Below are positions 1 to 14,271 of a DNA stretch of 64,000 bases, one piece after another (within the stretch, counting starts at the first letter, position 1; each line of letters starts with the position of its first letter). The translations under genes were made by a program, and so were the position numbers. Below the pieces are notes generated by a model that worked only from the letters and a program-made list of their open reading frames with translations, had not been told where the DNA came from and ran no database searches. The stretch is from assembly GCA_010909165.1 (NCBI GenBank), contig MU008189.1, forward strand, positions 124,001 through 188,000. The letters run 5' to 3'. The stretch comes from Anthoceros angustus (taxonomy: Eukaryota > Plantae > Anthocerotophyta).

Positions 1-1291
1 CTACTTGGAGCAGCACTATCTGCTGAACGCGCAGCCTGTGAGACAATGTCAAGAGTTTCTGAACAGCGGAGCAATGAGATTCGGACAACCTCAAGCAGTG
101 TGGGTGTGGTTAAGGTGAGTGGTAGGGCGAACATTGAGGGAACCCTAAGGCCTTCTGTATCAGGGGCTTGTCCAGAAGATGCTTTACTTGAGAAGGAGGC
201 CAGCGCGGTGGCCGTTAGAAAGATTGATCGGTGCCCCAAGAGGGTAACCAGGGTGCTACTTATCATTGGGTGCCTGCTTGTCGGCTACCTACATCTGCGA
301 GTAAGGGGGTACTTCCACATCTCCTTTGTCAGATGCAAACATTGGATACTTCTAACCCTTTTGTTCTTGTGTGCAGTGGTGTGCTCGAATGGTATCATCA
401 TATGGGCCTTTGGCAGCTCTTGTTTCCCCTGGCATGGCGTGGTCTGTCCCAGTGTTGTTGATAATAGCAGTTTGTGAGACATCAGCCTTGAGGATTTAGG
501 TGTCAGTGGTGGTATTCAGAGGACCACCAGGCTTTCCTTGCAGCTCGCCTTGAGCTGCAGGGGAGGGTGGAACTGAATGTTGAAGGATAAGGCCTCTTTC
601 CCACGAGGTAGTACCTACCTCAATCTCTGGGTATGGTTTTCCCGTAAGCTGGTGATCATCTCACTTCCATTTCGTGTCTTTTGATATGCTTGCAGACACA
701 CACAGGGCGCTGGGGACAAGAGTCAAGCTCCAAGGATATGTACTTAGTGGTTGTCATGCTCCTTAAGGTAGCCAGGGCATGGTGAACAACGAATTCGATT
801 TGCACACTTGAATCTAGACTGCTGGAAGAATTATAGAGTTGAGCAAGCGGATACATGCGCATATGAAGCCCGCAAGTTGGGGTTTTGGATATTATTGTAG
901 GTGTCAGGATGAACGAAGGAAGATTCAGTTGGAAGATTGGTTTCCTAAGCAGTGTCTGCTCAGATTTCTTACTCCTGAAAAGGTTCATACACGGCTACTC
1001 CCTCTCTATGTTGAGAATAAGGGCTGATACGCATGGGCCAACGGCCAAACTATTGACAATTTCTCGAAACGAGAGAACGTTGTGCGGGGCATTTTATGTT
1101 GCTTTAAAAGGTATTGTGTTAGCTTTCACGCAACTTTATGCAAGAATCAGCTTTGATGTAAGCATCACTGTGCGCTATGCAAACCACATGCACGAGGAAA
1201 GTAGGTCAGCTGCTGCTTCTCCAAGACAGAGAATACCCCATTAAACTATGTTACTGCTGCTTGTCCAAGACATAGAATAACCCATTAAACT

Positions 1292-1969
1292 ATGTCAAAG
1301 TCTGTTCCAACCTTCTCAACTTGGATCAAGATGGCCAAGGCTGTTATCTTATTTGCGATGTGGATGTTGGTGGGCTTGCAAGCAGCAATTGCACAAGAGA
1401 GTTCCTCCTGTTACGACGGCACTTCTCGGCTCAGGTTCACGAAATTTTGGATTGCTAGGGAAGGATTATCCGATGTGACGTATGACGGCAGACCCATTAA
1501 CCTCGTAGGCCCGAAAACTAAATTGATTATTGATGCTAACGGGTTAGCGATTGCGAGTGTGGACGTGAACACCTATGAAAAGTGTGTAGAGGAAGGCACA
1601 TGTATGTTGTCGAATGGGAAGCTCATTGCATACGATTCATATCGTGAATTCTTTTTCGTTGTGGATCAAACGAAGTATCCCTATGGAATTGGGTCCACCA
1701 ACAATCCGTTGCACCCTTTTGTGAGCGTAGCCATTGGCGACCTACCCTTCGGAACAAAGCTATCAATTCCAGCGTTGAAGAACGTGAAGCTCCCAAACGG
1801 AGAAGCACATAATGGGTGCGTCCAGGTAGAGGATAGTGGTGGGCACGGTCCTTGTTACATCGATTTCTTTGTGGTCTCGTACTCAAACTACGTGGCATTA
1901 GATTCGAACTTACCGGAATACACTACAGCTGAAATAGACCCGAATTGTGTGATTCTCAATTACGTTTAA
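1292..1969 (+). CDS. Intronless secreted protein with a 3D (MltA-like, double-psi beta-barrel) domain
   Basis: 225-aa ORF with a hydrophobic signal peptide (AVILFAMWMLVGLQAAIAQ). C-terminal PFVSVAIGDLPFGT...HNGCVQVEDSGG...IDFFV matches the 3D-domain pattern VAxD..P.GT...DxG...ID.F. The FTKFWIAREG and YEKCVEEGTC segments recall fungal and bacterial 3D proteins (from memory). Confidence 0.7.
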   Translation: MSKSVPTFSTWIKMAKAVILFAMWMLVGLQAAIAQESSSCYDGTSRLRFTKFWIAREGLSDVTYDGRPINLVGPKTKLIIDANGLAIASVDVNTYEKCVEEGTCMLSNGKLIAYDSYREFFFVVDQTKYPYGIGSTNNPLHPFVSVAIGDLPFGTKLSIPALKNVKLPNGEAHNGCVQVEDSGGHGPCYIDFFVVSYSNYVALDSNLPEYTTAEIDPNCVILNYV

Positions 1970-2814
1970 TCAAACAATTCTATTCCTCTTAGTTTTTGCG
2001 GACAGCTCCTTGTATCAGCTAAAATTATTGATGAATCACGTCCTCTTTATGAATAAATTTTTTATTTGATTTTATCAAATTTTTATTAATTTATTAGGTG
2101 TATACTGTATATTTTATCAATTTTTATTCCTCTTGATTAAAATATTTGAATATTTTATTGAATAGTAATCATCATATAAATCAAGTAAAGAAATGGAGAG
2201 ACTTTATGCAGAAAGAAAACAGATGGAAAAAATACCATCTACACCAAAAAAAAAACAAAAAGGGGTCCACCCAACAAAGGGCACAGGGTCAAGTTAAAGT
2301 GGGTCTTAAGTTTTCACAAAAATTAGTTCCCGCATTGGTTTCTTGATAGTATTACCTCCACAGAAATAGATTTTAAATTAGTCTTTAGGAAATATCTTAT
2401 GAACTTAAGACTCTTGTCAAAATCATATCAAATGGCATGTTTTGGTCTATAATTATTTGAGAACCACATAGGATCATGCACTAATTCTTCCGTACAAAAA
2501 AGAACAAATCTTTTCAGCGTGCTCGTTTGGACTTGTGGAAATGGATGGCATAATATGAATTAAATAATTATTGTGGATATTGTAGCATGAATGTAATGAA
2601 TGCAATATTGAATGCAATGATATATATTAAAACCTATGTGGTGAAAGATGTTGGGCAGGAAAAACACAACACATTCCTAAACACCAAAAATGTGCTAATG
2701 TAATGGAATGATACAAAACTGATGTTTGATTATTAATTATGTAATAAAATATTGATACTCTAACTAGTAAACAAAAGGTATAGGTTGGACGTTTATTATA
2801 AACTAATTGGAGAG

Positions 2815-2925
2815 GCTATATGTAGAAAGAAAAGAGATGAAAAAAACACCATGTACGCCGAAAATAAAGAGACAACCAAACAAAGGGCACCAGGCCAAGG
2901 GGACTAACTCCCGCCATAGTAGGAG
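2815..2925 (-). mobile_element. 3'-UTR-only remnant of the CRE-like retrotransposon family
   Basis: Minus strand ccccttggcctggtgccctttgtttggttgtc...ttttcatctc resembles the 3' UTRs at about 8560-8670 (+) and 62945-63070 (-). Confidence 0.45.
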
Positions 2926-3070
2926 ATATTCTTCATTAGTGGATACATGTATTGTTGACTCCCGCAATCGCAGGAGACATTCTTCATTAGTTGATACATG
3001 TATTGTTATTCTCCCCCATATCAACAATATAAACAATACCTGTATCAACACATTTTTCATTAGTTGATAC
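2910..3070. repeat. Short tandem duplication, about 51-bp unit, 2 copies plus a partial third
   Basis: aggaga(t/c)attcttcattagt(g/t)gatacatgtattgtt occurs twice, and ttcattagttgataca occurs again near 3056. Confidence 0.8.
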
Positions 3071-4532
3071 AAGTATAAATTGGAAGTTCTTGTTAATAGA
3101 ACTTGGTACTTGAGATATCATATATTACTTTCGTATCTTTAAGATATAACTTCTGAATATGAAGTTGGTGATGAGAATTTAAAATTAAGGTAATACTTGG
3201 AAATTGAGACTTGAGATCAAGAGTTTGCAATTGATTTTTAGAATATATAATTGATAATTGGAAGTTGTAGTTGAAAGTTTCATTTTCTTACTTCGGATTG
3301 AAAGTTGGCATTAATCCATGAAAGTTGATTGTTTACACTTGGGAGTTGGTTAATGTAGTTGGCAATGAGTGCTCATAGTTTGGATTTGATGTTTTGAGTT
3401 GAGAGTAAGTATTCAAAGTTGGGCATTGATGTTTACAATTGACAAATAGTACTCGTAAGCGGAGGGTGGTGTATGTATTTGAAAATTTCTCGGTCGACTA
3501 ATGAGATAATGGTTGGGAGTTGCAAAGGACACAAGTGTACTTGGAAGTTGAGAATGTGCTTCGAGATTCGAGAATTCACACTTGAGAGTTGGGAGTTTGC
3601 GCTTAGGAGTAACAATTATACAGTTTGTTGTTGGGAGTTGTAGTTGCAGGTTGAATGTTTATATTTAGTACTAGGGATTTTGCATTGGTATTTGGATGCT
3701 CAAAGTTGGAAGTTAGATGTTCAAATTCAAAGTTGGAAGCTAGATGTTGGAAGTTGGTGTTCATAGTTCACAGTTGGGAGTAGGAAAGTTAAAAGCAGGA
3801 GGTTCACGATTCTTAAATTGTGATTTTTAAACTTAACTTCAACTTAAATTGTGATTTTTAAATTCATTGGAAAAATATTTTAAGTAAAGAGTAACCTCTT
3901 CGAGGAGATTGAGAATTGGGGATAGTACAATGAAGTTCCTAATGTGTTTGCAAATGTTGGGAAGTTTGTTTCTTCAATATCAATGAATTTCAAGGATATT
4001 CATTCATAACTTTGACACTTTGTGGAACTAACCAACGATAACAAAATATTCCAAACTATCTTATATATTTCTGAATTATATATAGTTGGATACCAATGAT
4101 AACCTAATTTTCAGAATATAACTTATTTTTGGGAAATATATTCCTTATGTTCACGGCACTACCTTATGTGAAAACCATAGTCAATAATGATGAAAGTTTC
4201 ATTATTTTCGTATGAAAGCTACCATAGTTTAACTCAAAAGTGTTATTTATGAAATAAATTATGTGAAAAAATGACTAACGATGTATAGTTTTATAGCTTT
4301 ATCTGAATGGGGAGCGGCGCGGGAGCGAGCGGTGCAGGAGCGGGCGGTGTGGGAGAGGGAGCGGGTGGCGCGGGCGGGCGGTGGGACCGGAGCGATGGGC
4401 GGTCCGGATCGCAGACGCCGACGCCGGGACCGACGCGTGGAGGTGACCGGCGGTGCGGGAGGTGACCAGCGCTGGAGGTGACCGGCACGCGGAGCAAAGG
4501 CGGCGGAGCGACGGCAGGATCGAGCAGAGCGG

Positions 4533-5012
4533 TGCGGGCGCGCGGTGTGCCGCAGTGGCATGGGAGCGGCGTCAGGCGCATGATCGGGACCGGAGCGGGC
4601 TCGGACACGGCGCTGGAGGTGGCGCGGCGGCGCAGGAGCGCGTCAGGCGCCGGAGTGGGTGCGAGTGGGCGCGGTGCGGTGCGGTACGGCCGGGGCGTGG
4701 TACGGCGGGCGGGCACGGCGGGCGTGGTTTGTGGTGTGCAACGAGCATGGCGTGCTAGGGGACGAGGTGCGAGGCGGGCGGGCGCGGTGTGCCGCAGTGG
4801 CATGGGAGCGGCGTCAGGCGCATGATCGGGACCGGAGCGGGCTGACACGGCGGCGCTGGAGGTGGCGTGCGCAGGAGCAGCCGGGGCGCCGGAGTGGGTG
4901 CGAGTGGGCGCGGTGCGGTGCGGTGCGGCCGGGGCGTGGTACGGAAGGGCGGGCACGGCAGTGCGTGGTTTGTGGTGTGCAACGAGCATGGCGTTAGGGG
5001 ACGAGGTGCGAG
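4533..5012. repeat. Very GC-rich tandem duplication, about 241-bp unit x2, inside a GC block spanning 4309-5280
   Basis: cgcggtgtgccgcagtggcatgggagcggcgtcaggcgcatgatcgggaccggagcgggct at 4541 and 4783; caacgagcatggcgt at 4739 and 4980. Confidence 0.9.
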
Positions 5013-5559
5013 GTGGGTCAAGCGCTTGGGGCGGGAGGCGGGCTCGGGGCAGTCCCGGCCGCTGGCCGGGTCATCCCCGGGACGGCGGGCTCGGCTTCTA
5101 CGAAGGTAGGATGTGCGGAGGTAGGGTGGGCAGGGTGGCCAGAGTCGGGCAGACGGTGCAGGGGCCCCGGTTGCCTACGACTCCAGAGGCGGGGCTCGGC
5201 TATGGGCTGCGGCCTTGCCGGGGTGCACGCCACTGGTGTGCCATCGGGGTTGCGTCCGGTGCGTGTTTTGCTGCGGTGGCGGTAGGAATTTATTTTTCCA
5301 TGATTTTATTGAGTTTCTTTTCGGTAGCTGGTGGATTTCCTACCCCTAGCTTTTGGTTGCGAGTTGCAGGTGCGGGTGCTAGTTTGGTGGGTCGGCAGTG
5401 GTTTTGTGGGTTGCAGTCCCTCTAGGCAATTCTCTTTGGCCGGCCTTTTGGGGTTCGCCATACGGAGCTCACACTCTGTATGTCTTGTAAAGGCTGGGGT
5501 CATTTTGTCCCCGGTCCGCGGTACCTCCTCGGCCCTATCACCCTCCGACTGGCGTTTGC

Positions 5560-8500
5560 AGGCTCTTGTAGTACCTTACCCAATGGGGCGGTCTAAACCT
5601 TCTGTGACTGTCAAGGACACTCCAAGTCCTGTCTGTGCTCAACTTTGCTGAGGTGTCAAGGGGGTGAAAACCCACATTGGGCACATGCATAAAGATTTCG
5701 ACCAGACTACTTGGGCTGCCCAAGTGCACATTGCGACCTCCTCCGTTCCAGTCACGAGCTCGGCGTCGATATCGTCCTCCAGGTGCCTCTCTCTTCACAG
5801 GAATGGTTGCGGTCGGTGGATCACATACTTGGGATGTTTGAAACCCGCATGCCCGCACATCTTCCGCAGGCTTCCCCACCACCTTCATGATGATGCCCGT
5901 TTGGCGTTCCGTCTTCCTTGATCGCCTTGCGCCAATCCCGTGACGAGTTAGCTTGGTGCCTTCTCCGCTTCTCCTTGGTGCCTTCTGTACTAGGGTGGGC
6001 TTGGGCATCGGAAGTTGCAGCCGCCTTTGACGCCGGACCGGGTGATCGGGCATCCTCCGTGAGGAGGCTTTGCGTGCCGCCAAGGCTCGGGCGCAATCCG
6101 CATGCCAGCTTGAATCGGTCCGTAATGCAACAAACCCGCTGCAAGTTGCTTGGCCGTGTGGATATGTCATACGCCAAGGCTCTTCGACCCCTCCTCCTAG
6201 CCCTCGCTTCTGAAGAGACCATTATTGCCCTCCGTGCCCTCCATCCAACACCCAAGGATGCCATCCCCCCGGACATATCCGACTATGTCCCGGAGGATCC
6301 GTTCTCCCTGGATCGGGCAGCTTTTGCTCTGGCACTCTCTACAACCCCACGTCATTCATCTTCCGGGTTGTCAGGAATAGTGTTTGAACACCTCAAGGAC
6401 CTTTTTCTCCCCGAAGATCCATCTAGTGGCTTCCGAGAGCTCTTTTCTCTGGCCGCTGCGGTGGCTCGGGGTGAGACGCCTCACCGGATTTCCCATGTTC
6501 TTGCAGCTAGCAGGCTTGTCGCTATGGACAAGCTCGCCCTGTGCTCCCAAGGTGGCCCACTTGGCGGGGGAAGCCTTCATGCGGCTACTCAACCGCACTA
6601 TTGCCCTTCAGTGCCGCTCCTTTCTCTAGCAGCACCTCAACCCCCTTCAATTTGGCATTGCCACTTCGGGGGGCTGTGAATATGTGCTGCTTTGAGTGAA
6701 GGCATGCCTCGATACCCACCCGGAGTGGGAGTCTTACAGGTTGATGTCGAGAACGCCTTCAATACCATCTCTAGGAGCGTCATCTTCGAGAAGCTTAGTG
6801 ATGCTGGCGGCGTCCTGGGGAGCCTTATACTTTTTGTCCGGTGCTTCTACGAGAGGTCCTCCAGCCTCTACTACCAGCACATACAAGAACTTCTCTTCAG
6901 GATTTGCTGTCTCTATCTTGGAATCGGCCATAGGTACCTGGCAAGGCGACCCCCTGGGCGGTGCTCTCTTCGCCATTGCTCACTATAGGGCTCTATCTAG
7001 GGCCGCCGCCTGATGTGTCTCCCTTCGCCATGCATTCTCACATCCTCGGGCCTGGGGACAAAGTCAAGGAGGCCTTTGAGCTCTTCTCTCATGAGCTTTC
7101 TTTGGTGGGCTTGAAGGTCAAGCTGTCCAAGTGCCGTGTCTCCGACGAGGATTCTACCTACTTTGCAGCTTCCTGCTGGGGAGATTGCTCCGGCTTTGGG
7201 ACTGTGGATTCTAGTGGTCCCTCTGCCTCGACTTCACCTGGAGCTTCTGACTAGCTGCAGAGACCTCTCCCATGTCGAGGACCTCCCTTTGCTGGAGGAT
7301 ACATAGAAGGCCTATGGTATTCTTTCCTCATGTTTTGCTAGGCGCCCCGGTTACCTCATCCGTACGCTGCCTCCGTCCCCGACCCTTTTGTCCCGGCTGC
7401 GGCGGTTTGATAGGAAGATTATGGATACTCTTGGAGACATCCTGGGCTCAGGGGGTTTTGAGTGCCCTGTGGGCGATCTAGCCCGCTGGCAAGCATCCCT
7501 ACCTGTGCAATTTGGAGGCACAGGTCTGCTCTCGCTGGAGGTCTCTTCCCGGCTTTCCTGGGTAGTTGGGCCCTCTCTGCCCCTGCTTTGGCTTCTCGCT
7601 TCATCCTCCATGACACGCCCTTTCTAGAGGATCTCGTATCTGGAGTGGAGGAGGGAACCTTCTCTTTCCAAACGCCCTGAGGCAAGCTAGGGACATGTTA
7701 TCAATGGATGCCTAAGGACTTCCTCCTTTCTCGACACGACATCGATGGTTTCGTGGGTGCATCCTTGCTCGAGAAGCCGCCAGCTTCACCGACCTCCAGA
7801 TCCCTCCATCCCAGTCCACAAGAGCGCAGCCCGTTTTGCTCGGAAGGGCGAGGTGCTTGGCCACCGCCCGCCCGCATGCATACGGGGTTTTCACATCGCA
7901 CCAACCACCTTCACTATCGCGATGCGATTCCATCTTGGCTCGCCCACCGTGGCTTCTTCGCCTTACTTGTGAGTGCGGCTCGCCTCGATGATTCTGGGCA
8001 CACCTTGCTCGGCCGTCCCACGGGTCATCGTGATTGCCACCACGATGCCATCCGTGATGTCATGTTCGCCATCGCTATAAAGCTACCACATGGCTCGGAG
8101 GAGCGCGATACTCCGTGCAGGTTGTTTAATCATGGTCAACCTGACTTTGTCCATGGCGACTGTGTTTCGTGGCGTGTATGTGATGGTTACCGATCCTACA
8201 CGAGACACCATCTCCGCCAGTCATCACTAACTGGCCCAGTTGCTATCACGGAGCAGGCTCAAGGTCCGCAAATATAGCGGGATGCAAGCGGGCCACCTCT
8301 TTATTCCGCTTGCACTAGAAACGATGGGGCAATGGTGAGGACTTTGACAAATTTGTCAAGTCTTGTGCCAAAGCTACCATGCGACAACCTGTGACGGTTG
8401 TCCCTCTCAGATTCATAGCATACTTTCAACAACCGATTTCAATTGCCCTTCAACGGGCGGTCTCAACGGCGATCATAGGTGACGCATCTTCCTCTACCTC

Positions 8501-13355: not shown

Positions 13356-14271
13356 TCAGCAGATGGTGACGGTGGAGGGAACGCAGCCAGTATTGCAGCA
13401 CTTGCTGCGATCTGCAGGGCAATCCGAATCTTGTTCGCACTCGCCCTGGCACATGCCACTACTGCAGTAAGAGGGAGATTCTGGGTGCAGAGTTCGGCAG
13501 ACATGGCCACATCCGCCACAGTTGTTGACATCCAGCAACAGGTTCAGACATGTTTTGCCGTCACAGCAGGCTGAGTGCACGTCACTGCATTCGGAGCTGG
13601 AGTTACAGGACTCCACACAAGCAGAGTTGATGCAGGAACTGTTGGCTGGGCAGACGTTCCCACAGAAGTTGCAGTTTGCTGAATCAGAGCTGGTGTCTGA
13701 ACAGAGATTGGAGCAGCACCACTGGTTTGGACGGCACTCCCGGTCTTCATGGCAGGAAGCTGTACCAGGAGGAGGACGGCGGACGGGTGGAGGAGGCGAA
13801 GGAGGAGGTAATGGAGGAGGGAGTCTGCGTACACACTTGCCTTTAGAACAGGTGAATTTATACCCACAGGAGTTGGTGCAGGAGCCACAGTAGCCTGGGC
13901 TTGAGGTCAGATCCACACACGCATGTGTCTTGGACACTACGATGTCCAGAATCGAGTGTATCACTCCTGGTCGTCTGGTGCAACATGTTCTTGGCAGAAG
14001 AGCTCCTCTTACGTTCACAACTTGGAATTTCTCGCACGCACGAACCTGCAGCATTTACCAGCATACCATCAGGATGGACTGAACAGATATTTTAGTAGAC
14101 CATGTTGATTGCAAAATGAGAAGGACGGACTTTGCTAAGTGGGCAATTGCTGGATGACTGCGGCGAAGAAGCCTGAGCTAGCCCAGCTCCAGTTCCTCCT
14201 GACTTGGAGCACAGAGGCGTCAGACAAGTTAGCACTAGCAAACTGAGCTTTAGCATTGCAAAGTACATCAT
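13356..14271 (-). CDS. Secreted Cys-rich protein with three STIG1-like repeats and a Pro-rich linker; one intron of about 85 nt
   Basis: Signal peptide MMYFAMLKLSLLVLTCL; a GT..AG intron joins PLSK|VRACEK in frame. Repeats: CVDLTSSPGYCGSC, CCSNLCSDTSSDSANCNFCGNVC, CCDGKTCLNLLLDVNNCGGCGHVC. Confidence 0.75.

Follow-up and report, generated by a model that had tools for sequence, protein, structure and literature searches.

The gene described here lies close to the start of a 64-kb stretch of DNA from the hornwort Anthoceros angustus, the whole of which was analysed and is called the window below; it holds no N, and thus no gaps. The window contains only 1.3 kb of sequence on the 5′ side of the gene, which is read in one frame (Table 1). 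Its product aligns with fungal homologues without internal gaps from Cys40 to the C-terminus, and the coding region is therefore without an intron. The copies of a direct repeat found in front of the gene lie 44 nucleotides apart; the second of them provides the ATG at position 1292, and the first starts a 10-codon upstream open reading frame at position 1248. A further methionine, Met14 (position 1331), is an alternative start and could be the true one. By its sequence, the AATAAA hexamer downstream of the stop codon may be the polyadenylation signal. A tblastn search with the protein found no second copy of the gene within the 64-kb window.

Table 1. Features of the gene and of its surroundings, in positions of the window.
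Feature	Position	Strand	Basis or description
Complete intronless coding sequence of a secreted MltA-like / 3D-type protein	1292..1969	+	Single frame, 225 residues plus stop (ORF list)
Signal-peptide-like N-terminus, residues 1-34	1292..1393	+	Hydropathy scan, AlphaFold model, fungal leaders
First conserved Cys (C40) and N-terminal beta-strand (FTKFWIA) completing the double-psi beta-barrel	1409..1465	+	Strand at 47-52 in the model
Small beta domain set into the barrel (residues about 59-140), corresponding to domain B of MltA	1466..1711	+	MltA structural alignment, invariant columns
C-terminal 3D-type barrel part	1712..1966	+	Family profile aligned with YuiC and with MltA of E. coli
42-nt direct repeat, two copies, 93% identical, each ending in ATGT	1210-1251 and 1254-1295	+	Repeat search
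AATAAA hexamer	2052..2057	+	83 nt past the stop codon, opening an AT-rich stretch (28-34% GC)
Cys- and Pro-rich ORF of 232 residues, Stig1 family	13356-14054	-	PF04885, 7.5e-10

The N-terminus of the encoded protein has a hydrophobic core at residues 14–34, where the mean Kyte-Doolittle value of the hydropathy scan reaches 2.7, and the AlphaFold model places a lone helix at residues 8–33, apart from the fold. Cleavable signal peptides are laid out in this way, with cleavage here presumably after Ala-Ile-Ala34 and before Gln35, and equivalent hydrophobic leaders stand at the N-termini of the fungal homologues in an alignment of 40 rows. The protein has six cysteines (residues 40, 98, 104, 176, 188 and 219) and three aspartate motifs, AIGD (D150), VEDSGG (D181) and YIDFFV (D191). 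The inserted beta domain holds the C98/C104 pair together with the invariant E101-G102-T103, and the C-terminal barrel part holds D150 (positions 1739–1741), an H173-N-G-C176 motif, D181 (1832–1834) and D191 (1862–1864). An earlier note on this DNA, made from the letters alone, had described an intronless secreted protein with a Cys-containing domain carrying these same three motifs, a description that agrees with what we see. It had also remarked on a more AT-rich look than that of neighbouring host genes, which holds for overall composition (45.7% GC in the ORF against about 51% for the window) but not at third codon positions, where a GC content of 0.518 is level with the 0.52–0.53 of neighbouring PPR ORFs and leaves no contrast with the host.

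The gene is located among ordinary plant genes of the hornwort genome. Exons of SAICAR synthetase (PUR7) and of a Stig1-like protein were identified by Pfam 8–12 kb from it, and a PPR gene in the window ends in a DYW:KP-type domain (‘KPAKA’ ... ‘GDRH’), a type that to our knowledge is restricted to hornworts, lycophytes and ferns. Two other stretches of the window are peculiar in composition or content. Positions 4250–5250, which follow the AT-rich tail of the gene and precede the genes beyond it, are 70–75% GC with a strong GC skew, and carry long overlapping ORFs on both strands with repeated Ala/Arg/Pro/Gly-rich text. Several forward-strand ORFs at 5900–8300 resemble, by eye, the remnants of a reverse-transcriptase-type element, with no Pfam match at E up to 0.01.

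Assigning the protein to a family from its own sequence gave nothing directly: Pfam and NCBIfam scans found no family at E up to 1, and neither the curated 3D model (PF06725) nor the MltA-specific one (PF03562) matched it. Among 40 close family members PF06725 touched a single one, at E 0.036. A sequence search of the PDB with the single protein returned chance-level matches only, and the same search with a profile of the close family returned none. An exhaustive phmmer search of 1.84 billion protein representatives gave 545 matches with E no higher than 0.001, of which 119 reached 1e-10 and 16 reached 1e-30, and with E-values down to 1.5e-58, the best for the window protein, the likeness is not due to chance. 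Among the more distant direct matches (98 proteins, E 2e-22 to 3e-9), 46 carry PF06725, with a best E-value for that model of 2e-14, and a profile built from the 98 reaches YuiC of B. subtilis at E 1e-5 and MltA of E. coli at E 0.01.

The profile alignment places D181 on D297 of MltA, and D191, in ‘YIDFF’, on Asp308 in the ‘HFDIY’ of chain 2ae0_X, the position altered in PDB entries that have MltA-D308A in their title. The N-terminal FTKFWIA strand is aligned with the ‘TGYYTP’ strand of E. coli MltA in a first stretch that is weak and non-significant. The 3D domain is named for three conserved aspartates, which are D150, D181 and D191 here. None of the three varies in the 40-row alignment, and across 204 rows of the family the second and third hardly vary. 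The window protein belongs to the 3D / MltA-like double-psi beta-barrel superfamily and is homologous to proteins that bear the 3D domain.

The relatives of the protein are fungal wherever they have a name. A word search with the single protein gave one relative, and a profile of two sequences opened the family, giving 166 proteins of which all the named ones are from Mucoromycota (Mucorales, Umbelopsis, Endogone, Jimgerdemannia), at 38–46% identity. In the exhaustive search the best named matches were from Endogone, Jimgerdemannia and Bifiguratus, and more distant relatives come from a second clade of Mucorales and from Hyaloraphidium, Lobulomyces, Dimargaris, Calcarisporiella and Basidiobolus. 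Identity to any named fungal protein is 46% at most. Named plant proteins were absent from the matches of the word searches and from 30 proteins looked up in clusters, and scans of 185,579 species genomes for signature peptides of the family confirmed no bacterial or archaeal relative. The secreted ‘3D domain-containing’ proteins of Mucoromycota, for instance those of Endogone sp. FLAS-F59071 (P0087, P0107), Jimgerdemannia flammicorona (P0099, P0124), Bifiguratus adelaidae (P0123) and many Mucorales, are equal in length to the window protein, have a signal peptide, share 38–46% identity over the mature protein and match it in invariant residues and in the pattern of cysteines. They differ in a C-terminal tail ending in a conserved Trp, which is absent from the plant copies.

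The closest protein overall, P0121, is 53% identical to the window protein and comes from the Logan sample SRR33208241; nothing more identical was found. The same sample also yields three paralogues of it (P0110, P0125 and P0126). The contigs that carry these homologues have intron-split genes and E-motif PPR genes, and the PPR tails carry an unusual ‘PGQSWWTD’ motif shared with the PPR genes of the window, so the sample derives from another land plant, probably a hornwort. Comparison of the window with these contigs by tblastx and blastn found no flanking genes in common.

Several assembled sequences from other sources merit description on their own. P0294 and P0293 (L006 and L007), on two contigs of about 1 kb, one from the JGI metagenome record 3300032756 and one from the Logan sample SRR21676477, share 50% identity with the window protein, end without the C-terminal tail of the fungi as the plant copies do, and stand beside Endogone P0107 in the tree. 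The Logan-derived P0073 is the Lichtheimia protein P0030 read through two insertions that resemble retained introns, so that at least some of the fungal homologues would be interrupted by introns, unlike the plant gene. P0127 lies on a 5.1-kb contig (Logan ERR11571141) of bacterial appearance, with tightly packed genes and ZnuA adjoining, and it groups with Jimgerdemannia at 98/98. A gene may have passed here between a fungus of the Endogonales and a bacterium living with it; no family member of the P0127 type was present in the bacterial reference genomes that we scanned.

An AlphaFold model built with the 40-sequence alignment has a mean pLDDT of 92.5, compared with 41 for an unusable model built without it. 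When the model was compared to the PDB with Foldseek, the first 14 matches were all MltA, at E about 1e-5. In VIA-align the best superposition was with the MltA of A. baumannii (PDB ID: 7esj; Z 10.7, rmsd 3.6, 162 residues), that of E. coli with chitohexaose gave Z 10.2 over 161 residues, and seven MltA structures gave Z-scores of 9.1–10.7 with 153–164 aligned residues, spanning residues 31–218 of the model. Proteins that consist of the barrel only reached Z 6–8 over about 85–90 residues. The barrel families native to plants (expansin, EG45-like, kiwellin and barwin) gave Z 6–7 over about 87–95 residues, below both MltA and YuiC, and had no sequence match in the Pfam and PDB searches; cerato-platanins and loosenins also gave Z 6–7. 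Since the matches to MltA extend over about 160 residues, against about 85–90 for the barrel-only proteins, the protein is, as modelled, a pared-down whole MltA, in which the N-terminal strand and the C-terminal 3D part form a barrel, and a small second beta domain is inserted into it, a groove separating barrel and insert. The likeness of the inserted domain to MltA is structural only. The earlier note had recognised a 3D/MltA-like protein, and had proposed a structure prediction as a check on the double-psi barrel; the barrel is present in the confident model, and the matches to MltA, the PF06725 hits among distant relatives and the equivalence of D191 with Asp308 all speak for the assignment.

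Bacterial MltA (E. coli; PDB IDs: 2ae0, 2pi8), a lytic murein transglycosylase that we take to be family GH102 of CAZy, thus has the two-domain fold in common with the window protein, and its Asp308 and Asp297 are matched by D191 and D181. The two differ in size, with about 335 mature residues in MltA against about 190 here and both domains smaller in the window protein, and identity is 13–18%. MltA is anchored as a lipoprotein, whereas the window protein carries a signal peptide of eukaryotic type and probably three disulfides, and its activity is a predicted one. A second known system is YuiC of B. subtilis (PDB IDs: 4wjt, 4wli, 4wlk), a stationary-phase survival protein with a stand-alone 3D domain, which has the 3D barrel and the three Asp motifs in common with the window protein and aligns with it at Z 8.1 over 84 residues, but is a barrel alone and lacks the inserted domain that the window protein and MltA share. 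Searching by shape in the ESM Atlas gave a Mucoromycota cluster at TM 0.78, a Myxococcota cluster with PF06725 at 0.72 and a Bacteroidota MltA cluster at 0.58. The Myxococcota PF06725 proteins are the nearest full-length bacterial shape (the TM-score extends over 186 residues, with a feature score of 0.94), though they are longer, at about 250–324 residues.

A secreted enzyme that would cleave glycan strands in the manner of MltA is what the fold suggests, together with the signal peptide and with D181 and D191, which are kept almost throughout the family. After removal of the signal peptide, a disulfide-stabilised protein of roughly 190 residues would be released to the apoplast or the mucilage. 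A glycan strand of the beta-1,4-linked GlcNAc type would then be bound in the groove between the barrel and the inserted domain, and be cleaved, with Asp191 serving as sole acid/base in the way that Asp308 serves MltA. The MltA fold takes a GlcNAc hexamer, as stated in the title of PDB entry 2pi8, and both peptidoglycan and polymers of the chitin type are therefore candidate substrates. Peptidoglycan of bacteria or cyanobionts, whose cell walls the earlier note had proposed as the target, is a possible substrate that we put forward tentatively, and fungal chitin or chitosan would be only slightly less likely. The literature searched held no functional study of the fungal family, nor of a role of PF06725 relevant here, and the family goes without mention in a paper on gene transfer in early-diverging fungi.

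A protein that binds glycans without cleaving them, acting like an expansin or a loosenin to loosen walls or trap effectors, appears unlikely for the window copy, in which both D191 and D181 are kept, as they are in nearly all of the 204 rows, and which resembles two-domain MltA (Z 10.7 over 162 residues) well beyond the barrel-only proteins (Z 6–7 over about 87). The idea draws on the likeness of the barrel to those of expansins, kiwellins, cerato-platanins and loosenins at the latter scores, and on two of the paralogues from SRR33208241. In P0125 (L003:8518-9129, forward strand) an Arg replaces the catalytic Asp (‘CSIRLF’), and in P0126 (L004) it is replaced by Ala, and a use in binding only thus exists in the family. 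Among the 204 rows, full-length proteins without the catalytic Asp are limited to these two paralogues, which take up three rows because P0125 is also present as the longer model P0266, and to two unlabelled rows.

The sequence of the window copy has remained close to what the fungi keep. At 33 positions that are invariant in 38 fungal homologues, 27 are unchanged, including D150, D181, D191, HNGC and EGT, and the changes are Y52F, P55A, K56R, N113A, N149G and R178Q. Compared with the plant paralogues, pN is 0.33–0.44 and pS is 0.81–0.88; synonymous sites are thus saturated, and for this reason we give no value of dN/dS. Such figures indicate an old divergence of the plant copies under what would be long purifying selection. 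They also bear on whether the transferred gene has become a decaying or silent relic, no longer expressed or functional in this plant. The six alterations at positions invariant in fungi, and the duplicated 42-nucleotide segment that makes a short upstream ORF, are what such decay might look like, but the frame of 225 codons is intact, the three aspartates and six cysteines are all kept, and pN is far under the saturated pS against every paralogue, and we regard a relic as improbable.

Trees place the plant sequences among those of Mucoromycota, with moderate support. In a FastTree phylogeny of 202 rows, all plant rows fall together with a support of 84, surrounded by sequences of Endogonales and Bifiguratus. 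IQ-TREE with LG+G4 on 77 rows joins the window protein first to P0121 (99/71), then to P0125 (100/80) and to P0110 (96/88), and sets Mucoromycota and plants together apart from the chytrid and Zoopagomycota rows at 95/89. A mixture-model tree of 41 rows recovers a plant clade of four members at 90/87, adjoined by Endogone P0107, two environmental sequences and P0126 at 93/91. In both of the latter trees the plant copies form a clade of their own with long branches. Monophyly of the plant sequences is not recovered in every tree, and it is not rejected by the AU test (p 0.37). Neither is a constrained tree in which all ingroup fungi group together to the exclusion of plants (p 0.33), and nesting inside Mucoromycota, with a donor from the Endogonales, is therefore suggested and not proven. 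The fungal origin itself has good support, since members of the family occur in several phyla of fungi and the plants make up one small clade of it. The donor was most likely a Mucoromycotina fungus, the nearest sampled sequences being Endogonales-like, and the trees suggest that it may have been an Endogonales-like fungus in particular. We considered the C98/C104 pair as a marker of such a donor and rejected it: the pair is kept in Endogonales, chytrids and the second clade of Mucorales and lost in the main clade of Mucorales and Umbelopsis, and being ancestral it excludes only this last clade as the donor.

The tolerance of the AU test for plants as sister to all Mucoromycota sequences (p 0.33) is also compatible with vertical inheritance, in which an old eukaryotic or plant family was kept in hornworts and lost elsewhere. 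The published analysis of related genes discussed below used unspecified ‘plant homologs’ as its outgroup (PMC7027989), and many of the unnamed matches of our exhaustive search have no organism assigned. Nonetheless we hold this explanation to be very unlikely, as all named relatives in the word searches and the 30 cluster look-ups are fungi with no named plant protein among them, and as a split at 95/89 leaves the sequences of chytrids and Zoopagomycota outside the group that unites Mucoromycota with the plants, so that vertical descent would need many losses across eukaryotes. That the ORF of a fungal associate was joined to plant DNA, through contamination or a chimeric assembly, is scarcely credible: the ORF does lie just 1.3 kb from the start of the window, an AT-rich stretch and one of 70–75% GC do separate it from the first recognisable plant gene, and hornworts do host Mucoromycotina fungi, but the window is gap-free, GC3 equals that of the host PPR genes, no named fungal protein is more than 46% identical, and the proteins closest to it, four paralogues, are encoded on contigs of plant type from a second sample. 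The published A. angustus copies, moreover, are embedded among plant genes (Zhang et al. 2020; PMC7027989). We take the gene to be real, intact, resident in the plant and of fungal origin.

The reading that we prefer, and in which we have good though not complete confidence, is that of a nuclear hornwort gene derived from a fungus and coding for a small secreted enzyme with the two-domain MltA / 3D fold. A plant ancestor would have acquired the gene from a Mucoromycotina fungus, and the family would then have duplicated within plants. The earlier note had suspected horizontal transfer, on the grounds of a likeness to early-diverging fungal proteins and of a family untypical of land plants. Our results support this: every named match is from Mucoromycota or, further out, from Zoopagomycota or chytrids, no named plant protein was found in our searches, and the trees put the gene and its paralogues among Mucoromycota sequences while the gene itself lies in a gap-free window of plant genes.

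Transfer of 3D genes from Mucoromycota to A. angustus is already known, as a supplementary figure only. Zhang et al. (2020, Nat Plants; PMC7027989) reported five fungus-derived families in A. angustus, and their Supplementary Fig. 84 shows that the ‘3D domain proteins’ AANG010888 and AANG004622 cluster with Mucoromycota and lie among plant genes, which they interpreted as fungus-to-hornwort transfer. By this published description, both resemble the window gene in being nuclear hornwort genes with a 3D-type product and Mucoromycota homologues as their neighbours in the tree; the window gene groups with Mucoromycota rather than with plant proteins in all three of our trees (ingroup support 95/89). 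They differ in being said to have introns, where the coding region in the window has none (PMC7027989). That study contains no analysis of the fold, the catalytic residues or the order of the donor (PMC7027989).

One of the contigs from SRR33208241 carries an arrangement that may extend the family in another direction. At L004:130-3180, on the forward strand, the parts of an apparent receptor kinase with an MltA-like outer domain lie in order on one strand: a signal peptide and 3D-like domain (P0126), an exon with a transmembrane helix (within the ORF at 1098–1403), and kinase exons (1469–3180) with GxGxxG, HRDIKASN and DFG motifs. It is conceivable, if improbable, that the fungal MltA-like family became a two-part apoplastic system in hornworts, made up of active secreted enzymes, such as the window protein, that release glycans and of catalytically dead sensors fused to receptor kinases. 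If this were true, fragments released from the walls of the cyanobiont, of other bacteria or of fungi would be sensed by the dead paralogues, and hornworts would have a module for symbiosis or immunity that came from outside, a parallel to the LysM receptors.

Hornworts live with both Mucoromycotina fungi and Nostoc, and the Endogonales are an order known as symbionts of bryophytes. In this lineage with both associations, the gene offers a clean case of transfer from a fungus to a plant. What is added here to the known transfer is that the product looks to be a pared-down whole MltA, beyond a 3D barrel alone; that the catalytic Asp is kept in the window copy and lost in two paralogues of another plant; and that Endogonales are the nearest sampled fungi, with plant copies that appear old and under purifying selection. 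The protein is small and easily expressed, and as a member of a large family of fungi and plants it would inform both the biology of fungal walls and the interaction of hornworts with microbes.
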